64,000 nucleotides of DNA. Source: Squalus acanthias. Taxonomy: Eukaryota. A model generated the notes under the pieces. The model had not been told where the DNA came from. It ran no database searches and was given only the letters and a program-made list of their open reading frames with translations. The position numbers and the translations under genes were made by a program. The DNA lies in contig CM059430.1 of the NCBI GenBank assembly GCA_030390025.1, forward strand, positions 76,818,001 to 76,882,000, given 5' to 3'. Of the stretch, positions 1,909 through 62,133 are shown piece after piece; position 1 is the stretch's first letter; each line of letters begins with the position of its first letter.

Positions 1909-2022
1909 CTTTACTTTTCTTTAATTGACATCGCTTCGCAATAATGAGAGCCACCATTAGAAATACCAGTCCAACCCATGCACATCTGGAAATCAGTAAG
2001 ACACGGGAGCTGTTGGCATGAT
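1909..2022 (-). CDS. Gene A transmembrane exon: DHANSSRVLLISRCAWVGLVFLMVALIIAKRCQLKKSK
   Basis: Acceptor aatattttag, donor G|gtaata, 114 nt, phase 1-1. ~22-aa hydrophobic helix containing Arg, followed by a basic stop-transfer segment. Confidence 0.85.
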
Positions 2023-2694
2023 CTAAAATATTAAAGTAAATTATATAAATATTAAGGATTTGTTCAAATTGGCACCCAACCACAACTATAAGTAATGGAT
2101 TCCTGTCTGAAAATTATTCTCAGCAAACACGTGGTCTGAAAAAACAGACATTTTAAATCAATCTTTGCCATTTTGTATTTTTTTCACGAAAGTCTAGTGT
2201 TATGAAAAACATATTTTCTCAAAACGAATTTTAACCTTGTTTCTTGTTGATAATAAGATTGCGACTGAAAGTGACAACGGTAATTTTTAACTTTGTACTG
2301 TGTCTAATAGCTGTTGATACAATTACAGTTTGCAGCAGATTGTGAGCACAGATTGTGGGACGCAGGAGGCAGCGATTCTGCAACAACCTGTCGGGTGGAG
2401 TTACAGCCCACTCTTGCCCCAAGAGTCAGTGCCACATCTGAGCCGTGACACCAGGACTGCAGGAGGAGCCTCCCAATAAGGCAGGAGACCACGAGCAGCA
2501 ATCGTAGAGCTCTTTGAACAGAATTAAACCTGATTAAAAGTGAACAAAGGCAAACAGGATTCCTACACTTTTATGGAAGTAAAACCTGGTGAAAGAGCCG
2601 GAGTAGAACAACGAGTGAGAAAGGACAGTTTGTTCAACCGGGAGAGTCGCAGCAACTGCTCTGTCTGCAGGATAACTGAGGTCTACAATCTTAC

Positions 2695-3003
2695 CTGTAG
2701 GGTTCCTGACAATGTGGGTGGCCGTGGCTGAAATTTTGAGGGTACTGTGAGACACCAGGCAGGTATAAACGGTTCCGGTCTCGACAGCCTTCGTCTCTTC
2801 CAACCGGCTGGAAGCTTCATATAGTCCATCGGTGTTGGGTTGATTAATGTTATTTATCCTTGTTGTAATTTTGGTGCCATCCTTATACCAGGTGAAGCTG
2901 ATATTCTGCGGATAAAAGGGAGATGCTGTGCACAGTACAGTCAGAAGCGCAGGTGAATCCTTTTCAGGTTTGATAGAGACAATTTTCAGTGGAGTTGGCG
3001 GAA
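2695..3003 (-). CDS. Gene A Ig C1-set exon
   Basis: LTVLC...[14 protein letters not shown]...[10 protein letters not shown]...YTCLVSH C1 motifs; acceptor ttttag, donor G|gtaag; 309 nt, phase 1-1. Confidence 0.93.
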
Positions 3004-3789
3004 CTAAAAAAGTGGAGGAAAAGAACGTTACTTCGACATCATTCAAGGTCATAAATCCATCGTTGCATTTATGACAGGACATTTTCGCTGTGCGCTATCA
3101 GTAGGGACACAGATAACGGCATCTTCTAAATCTAAACCTGATGTTCATGTTTCCCTCTTTATTTGTGGATAAATTGTGTCATGTACTATTACATTTGCTC
3201 TACATAATTTTCTGTTGTATTCTATTATTACTCAGTGCTAATTTTTCAGGTTTTTAACATCTTCACAACTTTAACAATCAGCACAAGGAAGTGTTGTTCT
3301 TCAATGTATCTGATCTAAATTCACAACATTAAAATACACCACAGGCCCTTTCCATAAGGGTAAGGAACACAGTCTGCTTCTCCCTCTATATGGCTCCTTG
3401 GATGAAGCAAATAATCTGATGTATGCAATTGAGAAAGTTTGCTGAAATTATATTCTGTACATTTAACCGGGGGTCTTACACTTTCGCCGATTTAAAACCT
3501 GGTTAAAGGCTGCAACAGGTGACAAAGTACGATTTTCCCAAGCGGGAGAGGCTTTAGGACTCAGGTTCTGGTCAACATTTTCCTTACTGGAGATTAGGAA
3601 GTTTATGAAAATATGGGGTTGGTGGTTCAGGACGCAGACAGAGCACAATAACTAACTGTTATTTACACCCGGATTTCAAGACTCTCAATATATGGATCAT
3701 TATATTATAAATCCGCCAATCTGTATTCCAAGAGTAAATGTCAGCCCTCACAAACCAAGACAGACAATGACGTACATTTGCATTATAAT

Positions 3790-4145
3790 CTTTGTTGATA
3801 TGCTAGCATAACAGCAGCCAATTCGCACACAGCAAGGCCCCACAGAGAGTTCTGAGGTAAATAATCAGATAATATGTTTCAGTAGTGTTGCTGAGCGATA
3901 AATATTGGCCAAAACTCCACTGCTCTTCCTGGAATAGTGTCATAGGATCTTTTGCGTCCTGAGAGGGCAGATGGTGTCTCGGTTTAAGGTCTCCACAGAC
4001 TGATGGAATCTCCGACAGTGCAGCACTCCCTCAGCACTGCACTGAAGTGTCAGCCTAGATTAAGTGCTCAAGTATCTGGAGTGAGATTTGAACCAAGGAC
4101 CTTCTGACTCCGAGGCAGGGTGACACCAGTGAGCCATGGGTGACA
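3790..4145 (-). mobile_element. tRNA-derived DeuSINE (SacSINE1-like); paralogue ~60335-60680
   Basis: Minus strand shows A/B-box-like head (ggctcactgg...ggttcaaatc) then ...gagggagtgctgcactgtcgga...ttaaaccgag Deu-type core. Confidence 0.75.
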
Positions 4146-4339
4146 TACTGGGGGAGATTTTCAACTTGCTGGCTTGGTGTCCCCTATTGGCCAGCCCTTA
4201 TAAAATCCTGGATTTTCATTTTCACTGATATGGGGCGGTTTCTATAACTGGTGGCCCAATCCTAACTCCAATTTTACTCTGGATTTGCAAATTGAATATC
4301 TACCCCATCAAAAAGAAGATGGCGGCAGATAAGCACCAA

Positions 4340-4524
4340 GGGGTAGATTTGATGTTGTACGATAGTGTAACACGGGTGATTGCAAGTCGACAGTCCGGTT
4401 TACATCTCTACCGATTTTTATTTCCATTGATGTCAATAGAGTGCAAAATCGGAAGAAATGGAAAACGGGCTGTAGATTCGCCATCACCCGAATTACATTC
4501 TCACACAAATTTAAAACCTACCCC
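4340..4524. mobile_element. Short hairpin MITE; relatives at ~1400-1545, ~4665-4790, 13545-13657, ~14117-14270 and in the duplicated copy
   Basis: Terminal inverted repeats ggggtagattt...aaacctacccc and a shared internal motif cgatagtgtaa. Confidence 0.6.
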
Positions 4525-4934
4525 AAGTAGATCATTGCAGCCGAGATACTTCTTGAGGGATGGATCCATTCTTCACATATACTGCAACTTTCAACTCTAC
4601 GAGTTTGTTATACAGATGGTGCTCTTAAATCTTACAATGAGTCTGTTAACATATTAAACACTAGTTGAACTTTTGGGGCCGATCGTTATACCGATATTTT
4701 ATTCCATTCACTTCAAAGGAAAAGACAATAGGGAGGGTGAATAACGAGCAGTCGCTCCGATATAGCGCGTTTTACACTATCCACAAAATTAAAACAACAA
4801 TCGATTTGTTTAATAATAGGGAAGTATTGAAATAATCATCTACATGTAACGCTATCAGTCTTCCGTGTAAGTACAATTTATATATATATAAAACAATTGG
4901 AATTTGAGTTGCAAAGTAAATCCATCAATGTATA

Positions 4935-6184
4935 GAAACATAGAAGATAGGAGCAGGAGTAGGCCATTGGGCCCCTCGAGCCTGTTCCGCCATTTAGTGA
5001 GATCATGGCTGATCATCCAAGTTCTGTACCCTGTCCCTGCTTTCTCCCCATATCACTTGATCCCTTTTGCCTTAATAAATATATCTAACTCATTCTTGAA
5101 TATATTTAATGAATTGGCCTCAACTGCCTTTTGTGGTAGAGAATTCCACAGGTTCACCACTCTGTGGGTGAAGAAATTCCTCCTCATCTCAGTTCTAAAT
5201 GGCTTACCCCTTATCCTTAGACTGTGACCCCTGGTTCTGGACTTCCCCGCCATCGGGAACATCCTTCCTGCATCTAGTCTGTCTAGTCCTGTTAGAATTT
5301 TATAAGTGTCAATGAGATCCTCTCTCATTCTTCTGAGCTCTAGCGAATATAATCCTAATCGACCCAATCTCTCTTCATACGTCATTCCTGCCATTCCAGG
5401 TTCCTGTCTGGTGAATCTTCGCTGCACTCCCTCCATGGCAAGAACATCCTTCCTCAGATAAGGCGACCAAAACTGCACACAATACTCAAGGTGTGGTCTC
5501 ACCAAGGCCCTGTACAACTGCAGCAAGACATCCTTGCTCCTGTACTCGAATCCTCTCGCTTTGAAGGCCAACATGCCATTTGCTTTCGTAAGCGCCTGCT
5601 GCACCTGCATGCTTACCTTCAGCGACTGGTGCACAAGGACACCCAGGTTTCATTGCACTTCCCCTTTTCCCAATCTATTGTCGTTCAGATAATAATCTGT
5701 CTTCCTCTTTTTGCCAACAAAGTGGATAACCTCGCATTTATCCACATTATACTGCATCTGCCATACATCTGCCCACTCACCCAACCTGTCCAAATCATAC
5801 TGGAGTTGCTCTGCATCCACCTCACAGCACACACTCCCACCCAGTTTTGTGTCATCTGCAAACTTAGAGATATTACATCTAGTTGCCTCGTCTAGATCAT
5901 TAATATATATTGTGAATAACGGGTTCTAGCACCGAACCCTGCGGTACCCCACTAGTCATTGCCTGCCACTCGGAAAAAGACCCGTTTATTCCAACTCTTT
6001 GCTTCCTGTCTGCCAACCAGTTCTCTATCCTAGTCAATACCTTACCCCCAATCCCATGTGCTTTAACTTTGCATGCTAATCTCTTATGCGGGACCTTATC
6101 GAAAGCCTTCTGAAAGTCCAAATACACCACATCCACTGGTTCTCCCTTATCTATTCGATCAGTTACATCCTCAAAAATTCCAGG
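4935..6184 (-). mobile_element. 5'-truncated CR1 LINE inserted in the V-C1 intron of gene A only
   Basis: RT motifs VYLDFQKAFDKVPH, GVPQGSVL, RPHLEYCVQFW. Absent from the paralogous site (~61468); flanked by 'ata' on both sides. Confidence 0.95.
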
Positions 6185-6319
6185 ATAACTGAACAATGCT
6201 GCGAACTGTGAAACAGTGTAGAATGCAAACAATTCCAAAGTATGATTGATCCGCTGGATATATTTGTAATAAAATAATGCAGTCACATGGATGTCATTCG
6301 CCGCTTCTTTTATACTTAC

Positions 6320-6640
6320 CCCAGACGGCTAAATTGGATCCCGTTCCGTTTCCAACTATTTTGCCACGATGGGCGACAGTACAATAATATACTCCCGAGT
6401 CCTGGACACTCACATTGATTATCTGAAGGAAGCCGCTGAATTTAGTTTTGGAGCCAGTTACTTTTCTGTTATCAGGTCCAGTGCTTAGATATTTTTTATC
6501 ACCCTGTTTCCACCAATATACGTTCACCCCTGGTCCGTCTTGAAAGAAGGGAATCGAGCAATGAAAGAAAACGCTTGTACCCGTGATTCCGCTCGCGCTT
6601 TCAGGGAGCTGAGTCACTTTGAGCGAAGTTTCGCAGAAGC
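6320..6640 (-). CDS. Gene A Ig V-set exon with germline-joined J-like segment
   Basis: VTQ-P..., FHC, VYWW, LQIINVSVQDSGVYYC, NGTGSNLAV (FGxGTxLxV register). Acceptor tttcccgatag, donor G|gtaag; 321 nt. Confidence 0.93.
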
Positions 6641-6811
6641 CTATCGGGAAAGAAAATCAAAACCGAATTATTGAGAATATTACAGGAGAAAAAGCGCGAG
6701 GGTAAGTGAGTCAGGCAATGTGTGCAAAGGACAATGAAACATTTTGTATTAAATGGAAGTTAAGCAACTCCACGTTTTAGCGAGAAAGCAATGTATAGAA
6801 ACAACAGGTAC

Positions 6812-6866
6812 CTGTGAACATGATCCCCAGAACAGAGAGACACTGAAGTACAGCACTCGCCAACAT
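6812..6866 (-). CDS. Gene A leader exon MLASAVLQCLSVLGIMFT(G)
   Basis: ATG at 6866, hydrophobic signal peptide, phase-1 donor G|gtacct, in frame with the V exon across a 171-nt intron. Confidence 0.85.
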
Positions 6867-6929
6867 TCTGAAACAATTGATCACTCGGAGCGACAGACCG
6901 TGAACTGGCTGATGGTTCGTAAGAACGTT

Positions 6930-7060
6930 GAAAAGCCGGAAATGCCAGACGTCACACTGAAGCGTGACATCCTGATGTAGAATTTCCTCTGAATTTATTC
7001 GCGAAACCTGTCCAATCTGGGCTGGGGGGAGGTAAACGGTGGGAATCGGACGTCATGAAT
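6930..7060 (-). promoter_or_regulatory. Putative gene A proximal promoter (ETS and CRE/ATF-like sites)
   Basis: CCGGAAAT (6936), GACGTCA (6948, 7049) and GTGACATC ~70-190 nt upstream of the ATG; no TATA seen. Confidence 0.45.
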
Positions 7061-8058
7061 TACAGGCCCTTGTGCGTGTTGTTAGAAGTGGAGGGGGTGG
7101 TAAGAATGACCGGCACCCCTATTGGCAATGATAAGGAAATGACAGGTGTTACAGGATGACACCAACCATTCGAAAGCCGTCATTCATGCCAGGTTTGTCC
7201 CGTCTGACGCTCGGGTCGATACCTGCAGCCGGGAATCGAGCTGGAAGTAACTTTTTAAAAGGCGTTATTGGTTCTACAAGAACGACCGATAAGTTGGCAA
7301 TTTATGAAAGCAAGCCGGCCTTCGATCTCTCTTTCTATGGTCTTTGGGGTAGGCGAAAATATTTTCTTTCGAATTCACATAAGCTTCAATAAATGGGTTT
7401 CCAAAGGGGATTCTTCTCTACAGTGTCTTAACCGGAGCAGGAGGAAAAGCATACCAGGGAAGCAAACTTCATTTGCCATCAAAGGAGTACGATAAGATCT
7501 CGATAAATCCTCCTTCCAAGATGTCACTCAAGAGATATGTCTGAGGTGGCTGCACTTACTGAAGAATCTCTACATAAGAAGCCAGACCTGAAACTAGCTT
7601 CCACCACCAGGTCATCACTTAGTCTCGGTGAGCTCATTATCCATAAGACCAAAGGGTTGGGGTTGTGGCCTAGGCTGACATGATGTTCTTCACCCAATAG
7701 ATCAATGTTTTCGACAGGAGAAGTTTCCAGTCTCTCAATGTACAAATTCTGTGTGACAACATGCAAACGTCCCTACAGTTCAATGTGAGGTATGATAGAA
7801 GTTGTCACTATGATTCATCCATTGACATCTAACAGTCCCTGACCGCTACCCGGAGTAAAATCATGTCAACAGATGGCTTGTGGGTGACAAAGCTGTTCTC
7901 ATTGAAATGATCTCATGAAACGTGGCCTGAACAACAGCAGAGCAGGGTGACAATCAGACGCAAACGTCTTTCAGATTGGTAATTGAAAGGACGACCCGTG
8001 CTGTGGATAGTACACACTGCAGCCAGAGTACGCCGCCGGTAAAGGGAGTGGAAGTTAA

Positions 8059-10910
8059 GAACATAAGAACATAAGAAATAGGAGCAGGAGTAGGTCATTC
8101 GGCCCTTCGAGCCTGCTCCGCTATTCAATGAGATCATAACTGATCTTCTGCCTCAACTCCATTCACCGGTCCTATCGCCATATCCGTTGATGCCCTTACT
8201 AGTCAGAAATGTATCGACTTCTGTTTTGAATATTCCCAATGACTGAGCCTCAAAAGCCCACTGGGGTAGAGCATTCCAAAGATTCACCACCCTCTGTGTG
8301 AAGAAATTTCTTCTCATCTCAGTCCTGAATGGCCTACCCTTTATCCTGAGGCTGTGGCCCTTGGTTCTAGACTCTCCAGCCAAGGGAAACATTCTCCCAG
8401 CATCCACCCAATCAAGCCCTGTAATAATTTTGTATTCTTCAATGAGATCCCATCTCATTCTTCTGAATTCGAGAGAATACAGGCCTAGTTTACTCAATCT
8501 CTTCTCATACGACAGTCATGCCATCCCAGGAATCAATCTCGTGAATCTTTGTTGCACGCCCTTTATGGCAAGTATATCCTTCCTTAGGTAAGGAGACCAA
8601 AATTGTACACAGTACACCAGGTGTGGCTCACCAAGGCCCGATATAATTGGAGTAAGACTTCTTTACTCCTGTACTCAAATCCTCCTGTAATGAAGGCCAG
8701 CATACCATTTGCCTTCCTAATGGTTTGCTGCACCTGCACATTCACTTTCAGTGACTCATGTACAAGGACACCCAGAACCCTTTGAGCATCTGCATTCCCC
8801 AATCTTTCACCATTTAGGAAATACTCTGCCTTTCTGTTTTTTCTACCAAAGTAGATGACTTCACATTTATCCACATTTTATTCCATCTGCCATGTTCTCG
8901 CCCACTCACTGAGGCTGTCAAGATCCCCCTGAAGCCTCTTCACATCCTCTTCACAACTGACACTGACATTTAGCTTTGTACCATCAGCAAATTTGGAAAT
9001 GTTACATTTAGTCCCCTCATCCAAATCATTGATACAGATTGTGAATAGCTGGGGCCCAAGCACCAATCCTTGCGGTACCCCACTAGTCACAGCCTGCCAT
9101 CCTGAAAAAGACTCGTTTATCCCTACTGTTTGTTTTCTGTCTGTTAACCAATTCTCAATCCATGCTAGTATATTACCCCCAATTCCATGTGCCCTAATTT
9201 TGTTCACCAACCTCTTGTGTGGGATCTTATCGAAGGCCTTCTGAAAATCCAGATACACCACATCTACCAGTGCCCCTTTGTCTACTCCACTAGTTACATC
9301 CTCAAAGAACTCCAATAGGTTTGTCAAACAGGATTTCCCTTTCATAACTCCATGTTGACTCTGCCCAATCTTACTATTAGTTTCTAAGTGCCCAGTTATT
9401 GCATCCTTTATAATAGATTCCAGCCTTTTCCCAACTACTGATGTGAGGCTAACAGGTCTGTAGTTCCCCGTTTTCTCTCTCCCTCCCTTCTTAAATAGCG
9501 GTGTTACATTTGCCATCCTCCAATCTGCAGGAACCGTTCCAGAATCTATAGAATTTTGTAAGATGACAACCGATGCGTCCACTATCCCAATGGCCACCTC
9601 TTTCAAAACCCTAGAATGTAGGTCATCCTGTACTTGGCATTTATCAACTTTTAGTCCCATTAATTTTGCTAGTACTGTGTTTTTTACCAATAATAATTTC
9701 TTTAAGTTCCTTATTCTCGCCACACCCTTGGTTTTCTCGTATTTCTGGGAGTTGTTTTGTGTCTTGCTCCGTGAAGGCAGAAACAAAGTATTTATTTAAT
9801 TTCTGTCATTTCCTCATTCCCCATTATAAATTCTATCATCTCTGACTGTAAAGGACCTACATTTACCTTCGCCAGTCTTTTCCTTTTCACATACTTATAG
9901 AAGCTTTTACCATCCGTTTTCATATTTTTCGCAAGTTTGTGCTCATATTCCATTTTCCCTTTCTTTATCAATGTCTTGGTCCCCCTTTGCTGATTTCTAA
10001 AAAGATCCCAATCCTCAGGCTGACCGCTTTTTCTGGCAATTTTATAAGCTTCCTCCTTTGACTTAATATTAGGATTTAATTTCTTTTGTTAGCCATGGTT
10101 GGATCACTTTTGCTTTTGGGTTTTTATGCCCGAGAGGAATATATGTTTGTCGCAAATTATGCATTATTTCCTTGAATGTTAGCCTTTGTATGTCCAACTT
10201 CATAACTTTTAGTGTAGTCTCCCTATCTACCATGGCCAACTTGTCCCTCATACCCTTGTAGTTTCCTCTATTTAGATTGAAGACCTTAGTTTCAGATTGG
10301 ACTACATCACTCTCAAACTTAATGTAAATTTCAATCATGTTATGGTCACTTGTCCCTAAAGGCCCCTTTACCACAAGATTATTAATGAGCCCTTTCTCAT
10401 TACACAGTACCAGATCCAGAATAGCCTGTTCCCTGGTTTGTTCCTCCACATACTGATCCAGGAAACCATCTCGCATGCATTCCAAGAAATCGTCCTCCAC
10501 ACCATTAGTGGTAATTTGATTTGCCCAGTCAATATGTAGATTAAAGTCCCCCATGATTACCGTATTGACCTTGTTACATGCACTTCTAATTTCTTGATTG
10601 ATACTACGCCCTACATTACCACTACTGTTTGGTGGCCTATACACAACTCCCACCAATGTTTTTCGCCCTTTGCTGTTTCTTAGCTCCACCCAAACTGATT
10701 CCAGTTCTACATCACGATCTGCCGAGCCAAGATCTTTTATCTCTAATGTACCGATCTCATTCCTTATTAACAGTGCTACGCCACCTCCTTTTCCTTTTTG
10801 TCTGTCCTTCCTAAATGTTGAGTACCCTGGAACCTGCAGTTCCCAGCTTTGGTCACCCTGCAACCATGTCTCTGTAATGGCAATTACATCATACCCATTT
10901 ACTTCTATTT
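8059..10910 (-). mobile_element. CR1 LINE with most of ORF2 (APE endonuclease + RT), frameshifted
   Basis: GVVYRPPN, MGDFN, SDHN, NYRPVSLTS, GVPQG motifs; (ttcttatg)n tail; GTTAA target-site duplication. Confidence 0.95.
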
Positions 10911-15690: not shown

Positions 15691-16819
15691 ACACAGAGGA
15701 TATTCTCATAATACACAGACATTAAAACTGACTTTTGTTTTGTTAATGTTTTACACATTATTTTTCACCAGATGTTCTGCTGGATCACACCCAATGCGAT
15801 TTCTACCCGCTCTCCTTTACTGTAGCCCTCTATGCTAACTGTAGAATATAATAGCGATATGGTCATAGTGGGCGAAGACGCAAGGGAAGAACATATACTT
15901 CACTTGCAATAGATACAGGATGAAAAGTGGGCAATAAGTCTGTAGCTGTAGGTTGCAGCAGAAACAATTAATAAGTACGTATTACAAGGTGGATGAGCAA
16001 AGATTAGTGAAATTTAGAGGGGTGGAGAATAGGTGGCGTTATAGGAAGGGGGATGGACAGAATATACGTGCTTACCCAGCGCAAGAAGGTAGAACTCTGA
16101 GTCTAGAGCGCTCTAAGACCTGGAAAATTCTGGTCTAGACATAGAAAGAGATCTAACAGTTAATGTGAGGTAATGAATAATAATGAATGCATTTCTATAC
16201 TAACTATAAATATGGGAGGCACCTAAGGGGCTGAAACGCCTATTCCAAGGAGCCTTGAAGCAACATGCGTACAGGTTCGTAGCAGAGTGGCTTTTCCACG
16301 TGCACAGTTATGAATGTCTCTGAGAGCCCTGATGGGATTCCCTTTTTTGTGCAGAGTTTCGAGACATGCAGATATATGTTACTGAACTACTAATAATGTA
16401 CTAACTGCTAATTAGTCCACTCTCCGTATATGAATCTTGTTCGGATTTACACATTCCAACACTAATTAGACCATGATATCCTTTATCCATACCAACCTCT
16501 TACATTATACACTATTCTACATTCCCCTCCTTGGTACACAGGAACACACCTTCCCTATGATTCCACACTCAACTATATCTTTCACTGTTTCCTTCAAATT
16601 CTTCATTTATTTCACTTGCTTCCGGATCCATCTTACCACTCATATCATTGTAATTAATAATACACACATTAATGACTTAGACTACCACGAGCATCCTACT
16701 GCACCATCCTATTGCAGCACCGTGTCTGGGTTTGTGTCTTCTCTACCAGAAATCTCCTGCCGTAGCAGGGAGATTCTAGAATTTCAATCGGCTCCTTAAC
16801 AATTCCACACATCAAAACA

Positions 16820-35603: not shown

Positions 35604-35915
35604 CGTGCACAACAAGCTCCGATCCAGTTCCATTTGCGATCGTGTTTCCTGTGTATCTCACTCCGCAGTAATAGGATCCGGAGTCTGGGACACGGACACT
35701 CAGGATCTGGAAGGAAGCCTCTCCGTTTCTCAAAGGAAAGAATCGTTTTCTGCCGTCAGAAGCTAGTTGTATGAATTGATTGTCGCCAAGTCTCCACCAA
35801 TGAACATTTACATCTGCATTACCCTGGAGAGAGCTCGTCATGCAATGGAACGTAATGTCTGCACCTGCCATCACACTGGTGCTTTCAGGGGTTTGGAACA
35901 CTGCAGCGGGAGCAA
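35604..35915 (-). CDS. Gene B Ig V-set exon with joined J-like segment
   Basis: VFQTP, ITFHC, VHWW, FQILSVRVPDSGSYYC, NGTGSELVV; acceptor tattttacag, donor G|gtaag; 312 nt. Confidence 0.93.
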
Positions 35916-36115: not shown

Positions 36116-36161
36116 CTTCGTAAATAATCCCCAAGGCCCATATGTACTGACACACAAACAT
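36116..36161 (-). CDS. Gene B leader exon MFVCQYIWALGIIYE(V)
   Basis: ATG at 36161, phase-1 donor G|gtattt, 200-nt intron; Q....LGI pattern shared with the A/C leader. Confidence 0.7.
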
Positions 36162-47500: not shown

Positions 47501-49152
47501 CTCCTCCTCTGAAGAGGCTGTGCGCTCTGTGCCTTGCTCCTTCTGCAGCTCCAGCCCTCGCTGCTGTGCTATGTGGTGCAGCACACAGCAACCAACGATG
47601 ATTCTGGAGACCCTGGCTGCTGTGTACTGAAGGGCTCCTCCACATCTGTCAAGGTAACTGAAGCGCATCTTCCACATGCCTATTGCTTGCTCTATGACAC
47701 ATCTTGTGGACATGTGGCTCTCATTATAACACTCCTGGGCCTCAGTATTTGGCCTCCTCAAGGGTGTCATGGCCCACGTCTTCAGTGGATAGCCCTTGTC
47801 TCCAAGCAGCCAGCCAGTAAGTCTGTTTGGTTGTGCGAAGAGCTGAGGGAGGGTGGACTGTTGTAGCACAAAAGAATCATGACAGCTGCCAGGGAATCTG
47901 GCGCACACATGCATGATGATCTTTTTATGATTGTAGACGAGCCGCACATTGAGGGACTGGAAGCCCTTGCGGTTGACAAAGACTCCTAGGTGATGATGTG
48001 GTGCCCTGAAGGCCACATGTGTGCAATCCATGATGCCCTGCACCTGTGGGAAGCCAGCCAGTGCCGCAAAGCCGAGCACCTGCTCAGTAACACTAGCTTC
48101 ATCAGTGGCAAAGTTGATATAATTGGTTGACTTGTGAAACATGCCATCATTCACCTGGGTGATGCATCTGTGGGCTGCCGACTGCGAGATCCTCCAAATG
48201 TCTGCTGCACATCCCTAGAAGGAGGCTGAGGCGAAGAAGTTGAGGGCGGTGGTGACTTTGACAGCCACTGGTAAGGCACGTCCACCAGGTCTTCTGGGCA
48301 GCAGGTTTTGTTCCAGCAAGCTACAGAAGTCTGCAATGACCTAGCGTGATAGCCTGAGCCTTCTGAAGCACTGCTGCTCAGTCATGTCCAGGAAGCTCAT
48401 ACTCTGCGTCTATATCCTGTGTTGGCGGCATCGCCTCCGGCTTGGTGCAGCCCTGTGCTGACCGCCTCCTGTGCAGCATCAGGATGGCGAGGAGAAGGCT
48501 GGTGTTGTGGTTGCTGCTGCTGCTGCTGGTGTTGTGGTTGCTGCTGCTGCTGGTGTTGTTGGTGCTGGGGCTCATCTTGTTCCGATTCTGAGGTCCAAGG
48601 TGAGACAGCATAAGTGGCACCCATGCTGATGTAATAGATGGCAGGTAAAGCGGAGATGAGTGGCCCAATCCCTCAATGATAGTGACTAGCAATGTGGTGG
48701 GAGTGGATTCCGAGATTGCAGAAATGACCTGCAAACTGCTGGCAGCTAAATCTCTGCACAACATGGAGTCAGCAAGAGCGTTTCCATTAGCCAAGTAATG
48801 AGGTGCAATGTGTTTTTCCAGGCTCTCAATTAATGGACTGGCACAAAGGCCACTGAGCTTCCACCTCCCCTTCACAGGCGAGGTTACCGAGGTGCATGAA
48901 ACCCATGCTCCTGAAGTTAAAGCCAAAAGCTGCTGTTAAAAACACACTTAAGGGTCTCTCATCAAGCATTTAAGTACTTAAATGAGGTCGCCCGCCTCTC
49001 CCGAGCGGGTCTGTGGCGCACCTCCAAACGCACCCGAGTTAAATGCAGAAGTCGACAGGATGACGGCGGGTTGCCAACACGCTGTCAATTTGCGTGAGTT
49101 TAACTGCTGATCCGCCCCCAAACCCTCACGCTTAGAACGGTATCATTCTGGC
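44560..49152. mobile_element. Degenerate autonomous-type Harbinger: spliced Myb/SANT gene (+) and transposase (-, ~47390-48625)
   Basis: WIQCRKRFNDL followed by a gtgagt donor. Transposase [48 protein letters not shown]; in-frame stops. Confidence 0.9.
44975..45838 (+). mobile_element. CR1 3' fragment nested in the Harbinger Myb gene
   Basis: WADMWQMKFNAENCEVIHFG; (ttctatga)n tail. Confidence 0.9.
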
Positions 49153-52039: not shown

Positions 52040-55000
52040 ATACGAACATAAGAAGATAAGCAATAGGAGCAGGAGTAGGCCATTCGGCCCTTCCAGCCTG
52101 CTCCGCCATTCAATGTGATCATGGCTGATCTTCTGCCTCAATTCCATTCACCGGCCTTATCACCATATCCCTTGATGCCCTTACTAGTCACAAATCTATC
52201 GACTTCTGTTTTGAATATACCCAGTGACTGAGCCTCCACAGCCCTCTGGGATACAGAAATCAAAAGATTCACCACCCTCCGTGTGAAGAAATTTCTTCTC
52301 ATCTCAGTCCTGAATGGCCCACACTTTAACCTGAGTCTATGGCCCCTGGTTCTAAACTCCCCAGCCAAGGGAAACATTCTCCCAGCATCCACCCTATCAA
52401 GCCCTGTAATCATTTTGTATGCTTCAATGAGATCCCCTCTCATTCTTCTGAATTCAAGAGAATACAGGCCTACTTTACTCAATCTCTTCTCGTACGACAG
52501 TCCCGCCATCCCAGGAATCAATCTCGTGAACCTTCGTTGCACTCCCTTTATGGCAAGTATATCCTTCCTTAGGTAAGGAAACCAAAATTGTACACAGTAC
52601 CCCAGGTGTGGTCTCACCAAGGCCCGATATAATTGGAGTAAGACTTCTTTACTCCTGTACTCAAATTCTCTTGTAATGAAGGCCAGCATATCATTTTCCT
52701 TCCTAATGGCTTGCTGCACCTGCACATTCACTTTCAGTGACTCATGTACAAGGACACCCAGGTCCCTTTGAGCATCTGCATTCCCCAATCTTTCACCATT
52801 TAGGAAATACTCTGCCATTCTGTTTTTTCTACCAAAGTGGATAACGTCACATTTATCCACATTATATTCCATCTGCCATGTTCTCGCCCACCCACTGAGC
52901 CTGTCGAGATCCCCTTGAAGCCTCTTCACAACCTCTTCGCAACTGACACTGCCACCTAGCTTTGTGTCATCAGCAATTTTGGAAATGTTACATTTAGTCC
53001 CCTCATCCAAATCATTGATATAGATTGTGAATAGCTGGGGCCCAAGCACCGATCATTGCGGTACCCCACTAGTCACAGCCTGCCATCCTAAAAATACCCA
53101 TTTATCCCTACTCTTTTTTTTCTGCCTGTTAACCAATTCTCAATCCATGCTAGTATATTACCCCCAATTCCATGTGCCCTAATTTTGCTCCCCAAATCTT
53201 GTGTGGGACCTTATCGAAGGCCTTCTGAAAATCCAGTTACACCACATCTACCGGTTCCCCTTTGTCTACTCCACTAGTTACATCCTCAAAGAACTCCAAT
53301 AAGTTTGTCAAACAGGATTTCTCTTTCATAACTCCATGTTGACTCTGCCCAATCTTACTATTAGTTTCTAAGTGCCCAATTATTGCATCCTTTATAATAG
53401 ATTCCAGCATTTTCCCAACTACTGATGTGAGGCTAACAGGTCTGTAGTTCCCTGTTTTCTCTCTCCCTCCTTTCCTAAATAGCTGGGTTACGTTTGCTGT
53501 CTTCCAATCTGCAGAAACCGTTCCAAAATCTATAGAATTTTGGAAGATGAAAACCAATTTGTCCAATATCCCAATGGCCACCTCTTTCGAAACCCTGGGA
53601 TGTCGGTCAACCGGTCCTTGGGATTTATCGACTTTTGGTCCCATTAATTTTCCTAGTAATGTTTTTTTACTAATAATAATTTCTTTAAGTTTCTCATTCT
53701 CGCCACACCCTCGTATTTCTGGGAGGTTTTTTGTGTCTTCCTCCATGAAGACAGAAACAAAGTATTTATTTAATTTCTCTGCCATTTCCTCATTCCAATT
53801 ATAAATTCTCCCGTCTCTGACTGTAAATGACCTACATTTACCTTCGCCAGTCTTTTCCTTTTCACATACCGATAGAAGACTTTACAATCCGTTTTTATAT
53901 TTTTCGCTAGTTTGTGCTCATATTTCATTTTTTCTTTCTTTATCAATTTCTTGGTCCCCCTTTGCTAATTCTGAAAAGATCCCAATCCTCAGGCTGACCG
54001 CTTTTTCTGGCAACTTTATACGCTTCCTCCTTTGACTTAATACTGGCTTTACTTTATTTTGTTAGCCATGGTTGGATCACTTTTGCTTTTGGGTTTTTAT
54101 ATCCTAGAGGAATATATGTTTGTTGCAAATTATGCATTATTTCCTTTAATGTTAGCCATTGTATGTCCACCTTCATACCTTTTAGAGCAGTCTCCTAATC
54201 TACCATGGCCAACTTGTCTCTCATATCCTTGTAGTTTCCTCTGTTTAAATTGAAGACCTTAGTTTTAGATTGGACTCCATCACTCTTAAACTTAATATAA
54301 AATTCAATCATATTATGGTCACTTGTCCCTAAAGGCCCCTTTACCACAAGATTATTGATTAGCCCTTTCTCATTACACATTACCAGATCCAGAATAGCCT
54401 GCTCCCTGGTTGGTTCCTCCACATACTGATCCAGGAAACCATCTCGCATGCATTCCAAGAATTCGTCCTCCACATCATTAGCGGTAATTTGATTTGCCCA
54501 GTCAATATGTAGATTAAAGTTCCCCATGATTACTGTATTGCCCTTGTTACATGCACTTCTAATCTGTTGATTGATACTGTGCCCTACATTACCACTACTG
54601 TTTGGTGACCTATATAACAACTCCCACCAATATTTTCCGCCCTTTGCTGTTTCTTAGCTCCACCCAAACTGATTCCAGTTCTACATCACGATCTGCTAAG
54701 TCAAGATCTTTTATCTCTACCGTACCAATCTCATCCCTTATTAACAGCACTACGCCATCTCCTTTTCCTTTTTGTCTGTCCTTCCTAAATGTTGAGTACC
54801 CTTGAACATTCAGTTCCTAGCTTTGGTTACCCTGCAACCATGTCTCTGTAATGGCAATTACATCATACCCATTTACTTTTATTAGTGCCATTAATTCATC
54901 CACCTTATTGCGAATGCTACGTGCATTTAGATCAAGTGTCTTCAACTTTGCCTGTTTAATATTTTTCTGCACTTTGACCTACTTTACAGTTGGCCTTTGT

Positions 55001-55759: not shown

Positions 55760-57752
55760 CAGATTCTCCGAGCATCTGGAAGCGAGGCAATAGAGCTCGC
55801 TAGGCATTGAGGGAAACTAAAAGGGCAATGCCTTCTGAACTAATACAAATAAAAATTAAGTGAAAAAATGCAGTTTTTAGCCCTCATTGCCTTAAACAAA
55901 AAGTCCCAGATGGGAGTCTCAAGCTCTTAAAGCTGAATTCCCTTCCGAAACTCCAAAAATGGGAAAAGAGCTTCAGCACTAACACAAATGGCTCAGCAAG
56001 CCCAGGGTCTCACACGCAGCATTCCAGCTATTTTCAGGGGGGCAACACTGCATGAGAGGTTGTCTACCCACAGGAGCCAGGAGGCCCTCCAGAAAGAAGA
56101 ATGTGGGACCAGATCACCGAGGCCGTCACTGCCAGCAGTGTTGCCCCCACCATCTGGCTCCAGTGCCGAAAGAAGTTCATAACATCAGACCACTGGTCAC
56201 GATCAGTGAATGCATCTTCAAAAGTCGTCTCCTACCAACTGCATCACCAGCATCACACACTTCTCAAAGCAAAACTCCCCCCCCCCCCACCAATCACTCA
56301 CCTACCAACAATCTGTACCAATCACGAGGCACTTCTCTCATTCCTACCCTCACCTCACTCCTTGGAGGAGACAGTGCAAGCCACTCTTAACAGAGGCATG
56401 GCTGAGCCCCTGGCCAATGGCGGGGCAGAAAGGATACAAAGTGCTGGTATCCGCATATGTTATCCTTCTTCTGGCATGCACCTCTTGCATTCCCTCCCTC
56501 CAACCAACACAAATCTACCCTTGTGCCTTCTTCATTTCACACAACAAAGAAATGCAGCTTGCTCAGCCAATGGTTGGCCAAGAAGAGGGAGAGGAGAGTG
56601 AAGTAGAAGAACAAAAAGGAAAACCGTCACTTGATTTGACACACCCAGCCACCAGCTCCTCAAGGGTGACCAGCAAGGCCATCTGAGGTGTTCCTCATTG
56701 AAATTCAGCAGCCTTCCACCAGCCATGTTGCAGCCGCTGGGGTAGCACTGCGTGACATCAGTAGGATACGCAAAGGCACACACAAGTTAGTCACTAAGAG
56801 AATACATAAGGTTGATGTGGCGATGTCTTGATGTCACATTGGATGGATAGATGTACATATAGGTGGATTGGAAAGTTTGCTTCGTGGCGGCTTTTATTTC
56901 AGCATCGTGGCCAAGTGGACGCCGTAATGGTCAATAACAGATGGAAGGTAACATGTGGGACTGATGTTGATGGGATAATTGGGGTTGTGGTCACTGGTAC
57001 CACAGGCGGATGATTCCATCCTGGATATCCTGTCCAGAAAGGAGCTGTTTCGGATTCATCCTTCCGTCTGCTTCCTTCTCTTTGGCTTCCTCCTTTTCGG
57101 CTTCCTTCTCTTCGATTTCTTCCTCTGCTGTTTCTTCCTCTCCTGCGTCTTCCTCTTCCCTTGGCGAGCGGATGCTGTAGATCTAAAATGACACCATAAA
57201 ATGCTGGAAATACTCAGCAGATCAGGCAGCATCTTGACCTGAGACGTGAACTCTGTTACTCTCTCCACGGATGTTGCCTGACCTGCAGAGCATTTTCAGC
57301 ATTTTCTTTCTTCTCAGAGGTCCTGCAATCGTCCAGCAGCACTCCCTACACAGTTAAAAAAACTTTTAACATGTATCGCAGTAAACCATTACTTCAATAA
57401 ATTCAAAGATCAAAGTCCAAAAGCTTAAATGCAAACTTACCTGAAAGATGTAGTGGTCCCTTTAAGAGTTGCTGACAGCGCCACTGTCAATCTGCTGCAC
57501 ACTAGGTTTACCTCGAAGCTTAGGATCCAGCGCTGAACTCAGCACTAAGTTCCAAGTTCGCCGTGCTGACGTTAAGTCGGAGATGTCACCTCTCCCTCAT
57601 TTTAATTTGCAGGGAGTTGGATCTTACCGGCGGCACCGTCGGGCCTGGGAAAATGGAGGACGCCACGGGCCCCGACACCAGCTGGCGAAGGAGCGGCAGC
57701 CGCCCACTTTACGCAACCTTTTGCGGGTAATGGGTGATGTTAAGCCCCCGAA
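55760..57752. mobile_element. Non-autonomous Harbinger-derived element
   Basis: WDQITEAV...WLQCRKKF Myb/SANT remnant (+); acidic transposase tail (-); TIR-like right end. Confidence 0.7.
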
Positions 57753-58457
57753 TTTTAAGCCCATGAGTTGAGTGTAATAGTAACACATCGCTGTTCTGTT
57801 CCTGTGACTGAATACCAGCCCCTTGAACTGTCCAGTTACCCAAATAAACTCCCCTCTGCACCAACTTTTGAAAATTGCGACTGTTTCGTCAGAGCAGAGA
57901 AGATTATGGGGTCATTAGATGTGTTTACAATTATGAATGATAGGATAGGTGGGATAGACGTAATTTTGGCGGTAGTGTAAAAGCGACGATATGAGATTGT
58001 TTGCTCATTATACACCTCGCCCGATTTTGCTTTCAAATGAAGGAAAATCGGGCTGAACCAATATCGCCAATTTTAAACCATCGCCAAAATTACCCCAGAC
58101 TGTTTCCAGTGATTGAAGGGTCTAGAACGAGCCAAGACAGATATAGGATTGAATGTAAGAGAGGAGGAGAAACCTGTTTGCACAGAGGGTTGTGAAGATG
58201 TGGAATGCACTACCGAAGTTAATAGATGAATCAGAGACCAAGCCAATATTTAAGAATAGGTTGGCTGGGTGGTGGAAGGAAATGAAGATAAATGAAGCGG
58301 GTGGCCACATGGGATTAGATACTGCTGGAGGATAAGCACTGTTTAGGCCGATAGGCCCGCTTCGTGTTGCAATTTCTATCTAATTCTATGCAATCTGCTG
58401 GTAATCTTTATTAAATTCTTTTCCAGAACTTTTTTAAATAAAAAAAATATTTATTAC

Positions 58458-58571
58458 CTTTACTTTTCTTTAATTGACATCGCTTCGCAATAATGAGAGC
58501 CACCATTAGAAATACCAGTCCAACCAATGCACATCTGGAAATCAGTAAGACACGGGAGCTGTTGGCAAGAT
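58458..58571 (-). CDS. Gene C transmembrane exon DLANSSRVLLISRCALVGLVFLMVALIIAKRCQLKKSK
   Basis: Same splice sites as gene A; 114 nt. Confidence 0.85.
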
Positions 58572-59246
58572 CTAAAATATTAAAGTAAATTATATAAATA
58601 TTAAGGATATGTCCAAATTGGCACCCAACCACAACTATAAGTAATGGATTCCTGTCTGAAAATTATTTTCAGCAAACACGTGGTCTGAAAAAACAGAGAC
58701 ATTTTAAATCAATCTTTGTCAGTTTGTATTTTTTTCACGAAATTCTAGTGTTATGAAAAACATATTTTCTCGAAACTAAATTTAATCTGGTTTCTTGTTG
58801 ATAATAAGATTGCGACTGAAAGTGACAACGGTTAATTTTTAACTTTGTACTGTGTCTAATAGCTGTTGATACAATTACAGTTTCCAGCAGATTGTGAGCA
58901 CAGCTTGTGGGACGCAGGAGGCAGCGATTCTGCAACAACCTGTCGGCCGGAGTTACCGCCCGCTCTTGCCCCAAGAGTCAGTGCCACATCTGAGCCGTGA
59001 CACCAGGACTGCAGGAGGAGCCGCCCAATAAGGCAGGAGACCAGGAGCGGCAATCGTAGAGCTCTTTGAACAGAATTAAACCTGATTAAAAGTGAACAAA
59101 GGCAAACAGGATTCCTACACTTTTATGGAAGTAAAACCTGGTGAAAGAGCCGGAGTAGAACAACGAGTGAGAAAGGACAGTTTGTTCAACATGGAGAGTC
59201 GCAGCAATGATTCTGTCTGCAGGATAACTGAGATCTACAATCTTAC

Positions 59247-59555
59247 CTGTCGGGTACCTGACAATGTGAGTGGCCGTGGCTGAAATTTTGAGGGTTCTGT
59301 GAGACACCAGGCAGGTATAAACGGTCCCGGTGTGGACATCCAGCGTCTCTTCCAACCGGCTGGAAGCATCATATAGTCCATCAGTGTTGGGTTGATTAAT
59401 GTTATTTATCCTTGTTGCAAATTTGGTGCCATCCTTATACCAGCTGAAGCTGATATTCTGCGGGTAAAAGGGTGAAGTGGTGCACAGTAGAGTCAGTGAC
59501 GCAGGTGACTCCTTTTCAGTTTCCAGAGAGACAATTTTCAGTGGAGTTGGCGGAA
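59247..59555 (-). CDS. Gene C Ig C1-set exon
   Basis: C1 motifs, 309 nt, canonical splice sites. Confidence 0.93.
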
Positions 59556-61590
59556 CTAGAAAAATGGAGGAAAAGAATGTTACTTCGACATTATTCAAGG
59601 TTATCAACCCATCGTTTCATTTGTGACAGGACATTTTCTCTGTGCGCTATCAGTAGGGACACAGATAACGGCATCTTCTAAATCTAAACCTGATGTTCAT
59701 GTTTCCCTCTTTATTTGTGGGTAAATTTTGTAATGTTCTATTACATTTGTTCTATAGAATTTTCTACTGTATTCTATTATTACTCAGTGCTAATTTTTCA
59801 GGTTTTTAACATCTTTACAACTTTAACAATTAGCACAAGGAGGTATTGTTCTTCAATGTATCTGATCTAAATTCACAACATTAAAATATTGCCCTTTCCA
59901 TAAGGGTAAGGAACACTGTCTACTTCTCCCTCTATATGGCTCCTTGGATGAAGCAAATAATATGACTTGTGCAATTGAGAAAGTTTGCTGAATTTATATT
60001 CTGTTCATTTAACCGGGGTTCTTACACTTTCCTCGATTTAAAACCTGGTTAAGGCCTGCAGTATAACAACTGGCGACAAAATACGATTTTCCCAAGCGGG
60101 AGAGGCTTTGGAACTCAAGTTCTGGTCAACATCTTACTTACTGGAGATTAGGAAGTTTATGAAAATATGGGGTTGGTGGTTCAGGATGCAGACAGAGCAC
60201 AATAACTAACTGTTATTTACACCCGGATTTCAAGACTCAATATATGGATCATTATATTATAAATCCGCCAATCTGTATTCCAAGAGTAAATGTCAGTCCT
60301 CACAAACCAAGACCGACAATGACGTACATTTGTTTTATAGTCTTTGTTGACATGCCAGTACAACAGCAGCCAATTCGCACACAGCAAGGCCCCACAGAGA
60401 GTTCTGAGGTAAATAATCAGATAGTGTTGCTGAGCGATAAATATTGTTCAATACTCCACTGCTATTTCTGGAATAGTGCCATAGGATCTTTTGCGTCCTG
60501 AGAGGGCAGATGGTGTCTCGGTTTAAGGTCTCCGCAGACTGATGGCACCTCCGACAGGCAGCACTCCCTCAGCACTGCACTGAAGTGTCAGCCTAGATTA
60601 AGTGCTCAAGTATCTGGAGTGGGACTTGAACCAACGACCTTCTGACTCCGAGGCAGGGTGACACCAGTGTGCCATGGCTGACATATTGGGGGAGATTTTC
60701 AACTTGCTGGCTTGGTGTCCACTATTGGCCAGCCCATATAACATCCTGGATTTTCATTTTTACTGATATGGGGCGGTTTCTATAACTGGTGGCGCAATCC
60801 TAACTACAATTTTACTCTGGATTTGCAAATTGAGTACCTACCCCATCAAAAAGAAGATGACGGCAGATAAGCACCAAGGGGTAGATTTGATTTTGTACGA
60901 TAGTGTAACACGGGCGATTGCAAGTCGACAGTCCGGTTTACATCTCTACCGATTTTTATTTCCATTGATGTCAATAGAGTGCAAAATCGGAAGAAATGGA
61001 AAACGGGCTGTAGATTCGCCATCACCCGAATTACATTCTCACACAAATTTAAAACCTATCCCAAGTAGATCATTGCAGCCCAGATACTTCTTGAGGGATG
61101 GATCCATCCTTCACTTATACTGCAACTTTCAACTCTACGAGTTTGTTATACAGATGGTGCTCTTAAATCTTAGAATGAATCTGTTAACATATTAAACTCT
61201 AGTTTAACTTTTGGGGCCGATTGTTGTACCGATATTTTATTCCATTCACTTCAAAGGAAAGGACAAGAGGGAGGGTGAATAACCAGCAGTCGCTCCGATA
61301 TAGCGCGTTTTACACTATCCACAAAATTAAAACGACAATCGATTTGTTTAATAATAGGGAAGTATTGAAATAATCATCTACATGTAACCCTATCAATCTT
61401 CCGTATAAGTACAATTTATACATATAAAACAATTGGAATTTGAGTTCCAAAGTAAATGCTTCAAAGTATAACTGAACAATTCTGCGAACTATGAAACAGT
61501 GTAGAATGCAAACAATTCCAAAGTATGCTTGATCCGCTGGATATATTTGCAGTGAAATAATATAGTCACATGGATCTCTTTTATACTTAC

Positions 61591-61911
61591 CCCAGACAGC
61601 TAAATTGGATCCTGTTCCGTTTCCAACTATTCTGCCTCGATGGGCGACAGTGCAATAATATACTCCCGAGTCCTGGACACTCGCATTGATTATCTGAAGG
61701 AAGCCGCTGAATTTAGTTTTGGAGCCAGTTACTTTTCTGTCATCGGGTCCTGTGCTTAGATATTTATTATCACCCTGTTTCCACCAGTACACCTTCACCC
61801 CTGGTCCGTCTTGAAAGACGGGAAGCGTGCAATGAAAGGAAACGCTTGTACCCCTCCTTATGTTCGCGCTTTCAGGGAGCTGAGTCACTTTGACCGAGGT
61901 TTCGCAGGAGC
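61591..61911 (-). CDS. Gene C Ig V-set exon with joined J-like segment
   Basis: 321 nt, DSGVYYC...NGTGSNLAVW, canonical splice sites. Confidence 0.93.
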
Positions 61912-62078
61912 CTATCGGGAAAGAAAATCAAAACCGAATTATTGAGAATATTACACAGAAAAAGCGCGAGGGTAAGTGAGTCAGGCAATATGTGCAAAGG
62001 ACAATGAAACATGTATCAAATGGAAGCTAAGCAACTCCACGTTTTAGCGAGAAAGCAAGGTATAGAAACAACAGGTAC

Positions 62079-62133
62079 CTGTGAACATGATCCCCAGAAC
62101 AGAGAGGCACTGAAGTACAGCACTCGCCAACAT
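62079..62133 (-). CDS. Gene C leader exon MLASAVLQCLSVLGIMFT(G)
   Basis: Peptide identical to the gene A leader; phase-1 donor. Confidence 0.85.

Follow-up and report, generated by a model that had tools for sequence, protein, structure and literature searches.

The 64,000-nt stretch of the Squalus acanthias genome analyzed here (GCA_030390025.1, contig CM059430.1, positions 76,818,001 to 76,882,000; below, the window, with coordinates counted from its first nucleotide) carries three receptor genes on the minus strand, each with a leader, a V, a C1-set, and a transmembrane exon, as read directly from the sequence. These genes probably are members of a SIRP-related family of paired innate receptors of cartilaginous fish, germline-encoded and equipped with a single C1 domain. 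In our searches, the family appears to be large, unnamed, and confined to sharks, rays, and chimaeras. From the C1 tree, the protein-language-model comparison, and the occurrence of paired forms, we infer descent shared with the SIRPs; the family is SIRP-related but is not filed as SIRP, as it differs in the number of domains and its V domain is not SIRP-like.

The window has no runs of N. All introns of the three genes are in phase 1, all junctions are AG/GT, and the 12 exons contain no stop codons. The V exons comprise 321, 312, and 321 nt in genes 1, 2, and 3, respectively, and the C1 exon is exactly 309 nt long in each gene. Pfam recognizes the V-set domain in three out of three V exons (E from 2e-10 to 7e-10) and the C1-set domain in three out of three C exons (E from 1e-14 to 5e-13, better than the curated cut-off). 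Hence the sequence and Pfam bear out the layout proposed in an earlier interpretation made from the letters alone (the sequence-only reading), namely, three co-oriented minus-strand genes of the leader–V(J)–C1–transmembrane type with phase-1 introns, intact frames, and 309-nt C1 exons; its comparison of this layout to a T-cell receptor (TCR) chain also stands, the order leader–VJ–C1–transmembrane being present in all three genes. The limits given to the cluster in that reading, 1909-62133, run from the donor after the gene 1 transmembrane exon to the ATG of gene 3. The exons are as follows (P numbers denote the proteins used for comparison).

6812-6866, minus strand: gene 1 leader exon (ATG at 6866-6864; 18 codons plus 1 nt, phase-1 donor; tblastn with residues 1-19 of P0002, 84% identity)
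6320-6640, minus strand: gene 1 V exon with the J-like strand (321 nt; Pfam V-set, E 5.5e-10)
2695-3003, minus strand: gene 1 C1-set exon (309 nt; Pfam C1-set, E 1.2e-14)
1909-2022, minus strand: gene 1 transmembrane exon (114 nt; found by a hydrophobicity scan and by tblastn with the transmembrane region of P0002/P0003)
36116-36161, minus strand: gene 2 leader exon (46 nt; leader peptide identical to that of P0038 of Heptranchias perlo)
35604-35915, minus strand: gene 2 V exon with the J-like strand (312 nt; Pfam V-set, E 6.7e-10; 75% identity to P0038)
31106-31414, minus strand: gene 2 C1-set exon (309 nt; Pfam C1-set, E 1.6e-13; identity 85% to P0061 and 82% to P0038)
30519-30635, minus strand: gene 2 transmembrane exon (117 nt; uncharged span; collinear with the transmembrane region of P0038)
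30017-30102, minus strand: gene 2 candidate short cytoplasmic exon (AG acceptor, phase 1, in-frame stop)
62079-62133, minus strand: gene 3 leader exon (ATG at 62133-62131; tblastn with residues 1-19 of P0002, 84% identity)
61591-61911, minus strand: gene 3 V exon with the J-like strand (321 nt; Pfam V-set, E 2.1e-10; 83% identity to P0002)
59247-59555, minus strand: gene 3 C1-set exon (309 nt; Pfam C1-set, E 5e-13; overlapped by putative-RNA contigs)
58458-58571, minus strand: gene 3 transmembrane exon (114 nt; Arg-bearing span as in gene 1)

Between the end of the leader exon and the conserved V-x-Q that opens the V domain, there are eight codons in genes 1 and 3 and four codons in gene 2. 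For the exon census, the collected immunoglobulin (Ig)-domain proteins shorter than 1,200 aa served as tblastn queries. Almost all of the resulting high-scoring segment pairs (955 out of 963) fall in the 12 exon intervals, and therefore the window contains exactly three such genes; the remaining eight derive from long interspersed nuclear elements (LINEs), pieces of which are incorporated in the gene models of two relatives. No further Ig exon and no Ig light-chain cluster was found in the window with these queries. In all searches, each window exon was used singly, or annotated natural relatives were used.

The 3′ part of the V exon in each gene encodes Y-Y-C, eight residues, and then N-G-T-G-S-x-L-x-V, and thus a G strand of the J type, G-x-G bulge included, is encoded within the V exon in three out of three genes. 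Where the canonical J motif has Phe/Trp, each of the three V exons encodes an N-glycosylation sequon, N-G-T, and the strict form of this Asn sequon is found in 55 out of 103 relatives. The sequon in place of the J Phe/Trp argues against V–V pairing in the Ig/TCR style. A consensus scan of the window for recombination signal sequences (RSSs), allowing up to three mismatches, yielded no sites with the 12-bp spacer (0.83 expected) and one site with the 23-bp spacer (0.76 expected), the latter, at 5126-5164, lying inside a LINE fragment. The sequence-only reading had placed the J-like strand inside the V exon, had seen no RSSs, and had described the genes as non-rearranging; all of this held, with V and J in one exon and RSS-like sites not above the chance level, and the data support the conclusion that the window genes do not rearrange.

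The transmembrane span of gene 1 contains Arg (..LLISRCAWVGLVFLMVALIIAKR..), and its exon ends in a phase-1 GT donor. The transmembrane exons of genes 1 and 3 encode ..SSRVLLISRC-A-(W/L)-VGLVFLMVALIIAKRCQLKKSK, the terminal phase-1 GT overlapping AATAAA. If read without splicing, the frame past the transmembrane exon meets a stop after three codons in gene 1 (TAG, 1898-1900) and after 15 codons in gene 3; the TAG of the gene 1 read-through corresponds to TAT in gene 3, where the frame is 12 codons longer (1898-1909 versus 58410-58458). With their Arg and short tail, genes 1 and 3 would be of the activating type. Gene 2 has neither a charged residue in its span nor a tyrosine motif. Approximately 415 bp downstream of its transmembrane exon, the segment 30017-30102 is a candidate short cytoplasmic exon without a tyrosine; it matches the stretch following the transmembrane region of P0021 weakly (tblastn E 0.46) and, by eye, resembles the corresponding tail of P0038, the closest relative.

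Inhibitory tails were sought in the window and not found: tblastn with 52 relatives and a motif scan in three frames revealed no exon resembling an immunoreceptor tyrosine-based inhibitory or switch motif (ITIM/ITSM) on the minus strand of the window, and the sole minus-strand match to the motif pattern, 15831-15854, is bounded by stops. Genes 2 and 3, whose downstream intervals are covered in full by the window, therefore have no inhibitory tail; downstream of gene 1, just 1.9 kb is visible.

Both kinds of tails are observed in the relatives. Spans and tails were classed for 103 proteins whose scores with the V profile and with the C1 profile of the family each exceed 60 bits, the resulting counts being crude and heuristic. 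The V–C architecture is present in 98 out of 103 proteins, and a transmembrane segment, in 82 out of 103. Among these 82, at least one ITIM/ITSM-like tail motif, [SIVLT]-x-Y-x-x-[ILV], is found in 44, the typical order in a long tail being x-P-Y-A-x-L, L-T-Y-A-A-(L/V), T-E-Y-A-(E/Q)-(L/I); a basic residue in or at the span is found in 21, of which 16 have no tyrosine motif. The charged span L-L-I-S-R-C is shared by genes 1 and 3 of the window, P0014 (horn shark), and P0016 (stingray). A second charged span, in which Arg is close to the outer face and I-I-V-D-H to the inner one, occurs in P0020, P0028, P0037, P0040, P0041, P0121, and P0188. This span is conserved between the chimaera and sharks and seems to represent another old transmembrane exon of the activating type, absent from the window.

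On the V tree, closely related V domains bear either kind of tail (a clade of 17 rows), which, as far as sequence goes, is the signature of paired inhibitory and activating receptors. The proteins would be germline-encoded type I membrane receptors with a split leader, a V domain with the J-like strand G-x-G-(S/T)-x-L-x-V, one C1 domain, and a transmembrane span, and the V domain would bind a ligand. ITIM/ITSM pairs recruit SHP-1/2, and in long-tail members the ITIM/ITSM-like tyrosines would recruit SH2 phosphatases, leading to inhibition. An Arg in the outer leaflet fits adaptors of the FcR-gamma/CD3-zeta type, and in short-tail members the Arg in the outer part of the span may pair with an adaptor bearing immunoreceptor tyrosine-based activation motifs, leading to activation.

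The relatives were collected starting from the open reading frame of V exon 3 (region 1-99), which yielded five proteins among seven candidates. Heterodontus francisci accounts for three of them (74-81% identical), and Scyliorhinus canicula and Chiloscyllium plagiosum, for one each. These proteins, automatically named "Ig lambda-1 light chain-like" or "PTPNS1 (SIRP-alpha)-like," are collinear with the leader, V, C1, and transmembrane exons of the window. All 52 matches to the profile of these five proteins at E ≤ 1e-5 belong to cartilaginous fish. A 19-member profile gave 77 matches at E ≤ 1, of which 74, scoring at least 138 bits, represent sharks, rays, skates, and chimaeras (16 species in all); the matches outside the family are two coelacanth Ig light-chain-like proteins (58-64 bits) and one loach TMIGD2 (49 bits). 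An exhaustive profile search retrieved 313 representatives at E ≤ 1e-30, although this figure is too high because of giant multi-Ig proteins. The chimaera member comes from Callorhinchus, and the family is at least as old as the chimaera/elasmobranch split. Within each species, nearly all family members share one chromosome-size contig. The proteins in the collections closest to those of the window show 83% identity (V domains of genes 1 and 3) and 75-85% identity (gene 2), and the window's own products are absent there.

The automatic names of the relatives conflict (SIRP-alpha-like, SIRP-beta-1-like, Ig lambda-like, tapasin-related-like, CD276 homolog, NCR3LG1-like, that is, B7-H6-like, MHC class I or II-like, TCR-beta-like), and therefore these proteins are uncurated. 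Full-text literature searches, with most subscription journals outside their reach, produced no description of a VJ–C1–transmembrane multigene family in sharks. Thus, the family is rightly called an expanded one of cartilaginous fish, as the sequence-only reading had it, no other taxa having appeared as members in the profile searches, and its attribute "uncharacterised" agrees with both the inconsistent names and the lack of a describing paper in the searchable literature.

The C1 domain points to the SIRPs. In the careful C1 tree, the family forms one clade (support 97/88), sister to four SIRP-like C1 domains from lungfish and skink (98/97), and the Ig, IgNAR, UrIg2, and MHC rows lie apart from the clade of the family and SIRP. 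This tree has 49 rows, that is, 26 out of 85 family C1 rows, spanning the clades, and all 23 outgroup rows; the quick tree of all 108 rows agrees with it. The outgroups comprised the lungfish SIRP-gamma-like P0165, a skink SIRP-like protein, UrIg2-like proteins (Heptranchias, Hemitrygon), coelacanth Ig light-chain-like proteins, an Ig heavy chain, the alpha-3 domain of teleost MHC I, and a putative shark IgNAR heavy chain of 678 aa, taken for IgNAR from its V and five C domains. The choice was narrow, the best 150 of the representative search being family members and giant multi-Ig proteins with domain-summed scores. P0165 is a true SIRP relative, because its best PDB match is human SIRP-alpha (E 6e-43). 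The ESM Atlas clusters nearest to relative P0006, compared by protein-language-model features, are two SIRP-alpha clusters (0.97 and 0.96), and SIRP-alpha D3 is the best single-domain C1 match (45.5 bits) among the three best PDB chains given with per-domain scores.

The C1 tree bears also on the Ig light chains. Cartilaginous fish possess germline-joined Ig light-chain genes, and the window genes might be suspected to be of this kind, given that V and J are fused in the germline, that the V is lambda-like, and that several relatives are automatically named "immunoglobulin lambda-1 light chain-like." We consider this hardly credible and reject it: the transmembrane exon directly follows the C1 exon in each gene, the Phe of F-G-x-G is missing from the J, the family scores 138 bits or more compared to at most 64 bits for the coelacanth Ig light-chain-like proteins, and the C1 tree keeps the family C1 domains apart from the Ig light-chain-like C rows.

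The SIRPs consist of a V and two C1 domains, the alpha form having an ITIM, and the beta form, a basic transmembrane residue and DAP12, according to an excerpt of PMC12975943. Similarly to SIRP, all three window genes encode a membrane-distal V-set domain with a J-like G strand followed by a C1-set domain, and the contrast between ITIM-type tails and a basic span with a short tail, known for SIRP-alpha and SIRP-beta, recurs across the family, genes 1 and 3 having the Arg and the short tail. Unlike in SIRP, the J of the family contains a sequon for an N-glycan, the charge in the span comes from an Arg close to its outer face, and the family is limited to cartilaginous fish, with several old subfamilies. 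Clean orthology with a characterized gene such as SIRP, which the sequence-only reading had named as a refutation of its proposal, does not hold for the window genes: they have one C1 domain, their V does not group with the SIRP V, a gap separates the family matches (138 bits or more) from all others (at most 64 bits), and tree testing does not reject a link to UrIg2. The antigen-receptor kinship claimed in that reading stood in part, the layout being indeed TCR-like; the closest characterized relatives are, however, SIRPs rather than Ig or TCR, as seen in the C1 tree (98/97), the ESM Atlas clusters, and the paired forms. The genes may still be relatives of the pre-RAG antigen receptor, as proposed there.

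Several observations weigh against the SIRP-related receptor family as we describe it, and they fall into two sets, the first concerning descent. The family has one C1 domain compared to two in SIRP, and in the window the C1 exon adjoins the transmembrane exon. The family V does not group with the SIRP V in either the quick or the careful tree, and a PDB search with the V profile gives no SIRP chain in its best 60 matches (all at least 37 bits). The best PDB match of the V-only profile is the Ig lambda V (approximately 41 bits), the alignment continuing through the J, and the V–C1 profile scores lambda light chains up to 90 bits versus 69.8 for SIRP-alpha D1–D2 and 62.9 for the V–C1 of UrIg2. 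A single clade of the family C1 and the UrIg2 C domains is not rejected by the approximately unbiased (AU) test (log-likelihood lower by 11.2, p 0.18). Finally, the trees have no TCR, tapasin, B7-H6, NKp30, PRARP, or UrIg rows, and therefore the sister relation to SIRP holds within the sampled rows only.

Alternatively, the genes might represent a surviving two-domain VJ–C1 lineage whose nearest kin is the antigen-receptor stem (Ig light chain, TCR, UrIg/UrIg2), the SIRPs being more distant from it, and would then be a relic of the kind of gene invaded by the RAG transposon. We regard this as possible, albeit unlikely. Along with the lambda-like V and V–C1 scores, it is favored by the single-sequence PDB search with the C1 exon, where UrIg2 ranks first (9dmx, with 23-29 bits for each of three domains), ahead of IgM and SIRP-alpha, by the AU result on the family and UrIg2 C domains, and by the position of UrIg2-like V rows within the unresolved V polytomy of the family. 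The single-sequence PDB search with the V exon also ranks Ig light chains best, the totals being inflated by V-to-C cross matches and multi-domain proteins; for the V–C1 profile, the lambda V–C stretch that opens chain 2rcj_C, labeled as an IgA1 heavy chain, scores 71.6 bits. Section 6 of PMC12227049, as excerpted, postulates a two-domain VJ–C1 precursor of antigen receptors.

The careful C1 tree speaks for the SIRP relation instead, separating the Ig, IgNAR, and UrIg2 C domains from the clade of the family and SIRP (98/97). In the V trees, the family forms one clade with weak support (62/90), beside which UrIg2-like and TMIGD2 rows stand on long branches, the SIRP V being further off; the position of the UrIg2-like rows is flagged as a long-branch one, and the UrIg2 V scores just 11-17 bits with the family V profile. 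The family and the SIRP V as one clade are not rejected by the AU test (p 0.147). In Hemitrygon akajei, the family member and the UrIg2-like gene reside on different contigs, of 91.7 Mb and 62.8 Mb, respectively.

Separately, some proteins with tandem V domains deserve mention: P0141 and P0158 (turtles) and P0155 (Mobula hypostoma) have four or five of these, some of the turtle V domains ending in the J-like G-N-G-T-G-T-x-V-T-I. They score 26-49 bits per domain with the family V profile, the best (41-49) exceeding the SIRP, Ig, and UrIg2 V domains. Outside the family, these tandem-V proteins may have the V domains most closely related to it.

Comparison with the receptors that figure in discussions of antigen-receptor origin shows the same mixture of features. 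The nurse shark UrIg2 has a VJ, nine C1 domains, and a transmembrane region, with a single-exon VJ and a split leader (PMC12227049, in part). UrIg2 is linked to the IgH/TCR-alpha-delta complex. UrIg has several C domains, and its paper, cited in the same source, is entitled as describing a shark antibody convergent with IgG. In the available part of PMC10751288, UrIg and NKp30 are assigned to the MHC of sharks (chromosome 19 in the white shark), NKp30 is listed among VJ genes, and UrIg is presented as a novel VJ–C1 gene; an excerpt of PMC11599192 names CD79, NITR, SIRP, CD8, NKp30, and PRARP as joined-VJ genes. The white shark family member lies on a 193.5-Mb contig, which may or may not correspond to chromosome 19, the site of the MHC according to the said part of PMC10751288. 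Like UrIg and UrIg2, the window genes have a single-exon VJ, a split leader, a C1-set constant domain, and no rearrangement, and belong to cartilaginous fish. Unlike them, each has one C1 exon, compared to seven C domains found by the same profile in the UrIg2-like P0069, and the family is a multigene one with ITIM or Arg signaling classes. The features shared with TCR and Ig light chains are the leader–V(J)–C1–(transmembrane) order, one exon per domain, phase-1 introns, and C1 following V(J), to which genes 1 and 3 add the basic span residue and short tail of TCR chains; the differences are the lack of separate V and J segments and of RSSs above chance, the Asn sequon in place of the J Phe/Trp, and the ITIM-tailed relatives.

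The second set of observations concerns the window copies themselves. The loci of genes 1 and 3 align in blastn at approximately 93% identity (1-7400 versus 56517-62667, minus strand) in two blocks, 1-4934 matching 56517-61470 and 6185-7400 matching 61468-62667; the only large difference between them is a 1.25-kb LINE-bearing insertion at 4935-6184, in the V–C1 intron of gene 1. Thus, genes 1 and 3 are recent duplicates that arose by segmental duplication. Gene 2, just 37-41% identical to both at the protein level, belongs to a different, old subfamily. The exons of genes 1 and 3 are no better conserved than the flanking DNA (identity 91.9% for V and 90.6% for C1), and the ratio of nonsynonymous to synonymous substitution rates (dN/dS, Nei–Gojobori) is 0.53 for V and 0.65 for C1. 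These values fit relaxed or mixed selection on the ectodomain and do not imply positive selection; with exons that diverged like non-coding DNA, one of the two copies could be decaying.

Expression was considered for the gene 3 region, 56400-62300, onto which three putative RNA runs were aligned; DNA runs of one organism contained 54-58% of sampled words. The C1 exon of gene 3 is covered at low depth (at most approximately 11), and the bin with most of the transmembrane exon, at low depth in two of the three runs (X11 and X14). No depth was observed in the three runs on bins 61325-62300, which contain the V and leader exons, and the contigs on the C1 exon extend into both flanking introns. One contig on the C1 exon is nearly identical to gene 3 (one other letter in 256). 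An X11 contig on 58467-58573 has two other letters in 107 and ends 2 nt beyond the predicted transmembrane acceptor, with 28 extra letters not matching the intron; this overhang is as expected from a C1-to-transmembrane splice, because the C1 exon ends in AG. No splice joint is listed among the contigs of the three runs on this region. Taken together, these data suggest that part of gene 3 is transcribed.

A case can be made on these grounds that some or all of the three window copies are silent or decaying duplicates of an otherwise functional family: the V and leader exons of gene 3 show no depth, dN/dS is 0.53-0.65 with exons 91-92% identical compared to approximately 93% for the whole loci, and gene 3 has lost the read-through stop present in gene 1. 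We assign it a small likelihood, as all 12 exons are open with AG/GT intact, gene 2 is 75-85% identical to ortholog-like genes in two other shark orders, and the low-depth contigs are nearly identical to gene 3 on both the C1 (1/256) and the transmembrane (2/107) exons.

Contig depths on two segments of the same region, 60537-60733 in the V–C1 intron of gene 3 and 57188-57384, sum to 19,000-48,000 for the putative RNA runs and to as much as 940,000 for the DNA run; the segments look like a very abundant, probably transcribed short repeat. Mobile elements are found around the genes as well. Two copies of a Harbinger/PIF-like element flank gene 2 in opposite orientation (22133-23764 and 46063-48154), with DDE_Tnp_4 open reading frames at 22133-22762 (plus strand, E 1e-16) and 47495-48154 (minus strand, E 5e-33); beside each is an open reading frame of approximately 300 aa without a Pfam match (22871-23764, minus strand, and 46063-46983, plus strand), the two being alike. 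LINE pieces occupy the intergenic space, at 4935-6184, 8878-10863 (RVT_1 at 8878-9786, endonuclease at 10069-10863), and 52138-54620.

NKp30 has a non-rearranging VJ domain and an Arg in its membrane span, activating forms of both NKp30 and NITR have a charged span, and the second domains of NITRs are not known to be C1-set. The germline-joined VJ domain is shared by the window genes with NKp30, PRARP, and NITR, and one may ask if the window genes are members of a shark NCR3 (NKp30) family that retained a C1 domain. Besides the resemblance in the VJ domain and span, the score of 42 bits obtained by the loach TMIGD2, a CD28-family V, with the family V profile and the existence of several nurse shark NCR3 genes, whose accessions are given in the methods of PMC12227049 (seen as an excerpt), would agree with it. 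On the other hand, PMC10751288, as far as its available part goes, implies that the shark NKp30 has no C1 domain, compared to a C1 exon in all three window genes, no Ginglymostoma protein or named NCR3 is present among the 52 or the 77 profile matches, and the PDB search with the V profile gives no NKp30 chain in its best 60 matches. Hence the identity with NKp30/NCR3 is not supported, and we deem it very improbable.

If the SIRP-related family thus described is a true counterpart of the SIRPs, receptors paired in the SIRP manner would go back as far as the common root of the jawed vertebrates. What antigen receptors were like prior to the RAG transposon is judged mainly from non-rearranging genes that combine a joined VJ with a C1 domain, and shark accounts have so far rested on UrIg, UrIg2, and NCR3; the present family combines the two-domain VJ–C1 layout, a membrane anchor, and both inhibitory and activating forms. 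It is doubtful, although conceivable, that the family is the living form of the two-domain VJ–C1 root receptor postulated by Flajnik and colleagues, ancestral or sister to both the SIRPs and the Ig light-chain/TCR lineage. If it proved to be closer to Ig and TCR, it would be a new candidate in the question of antigen-receptor origin, and if family members are interspersed with rearranging Ig light-chain clusters, the kind of V exon split by RAG could be that of a family member rather than of a UrIg2 duplicate. Either way, the family offers a concrete set of genes for studies of expression, ligands, and adaptors in shark innate immunity.

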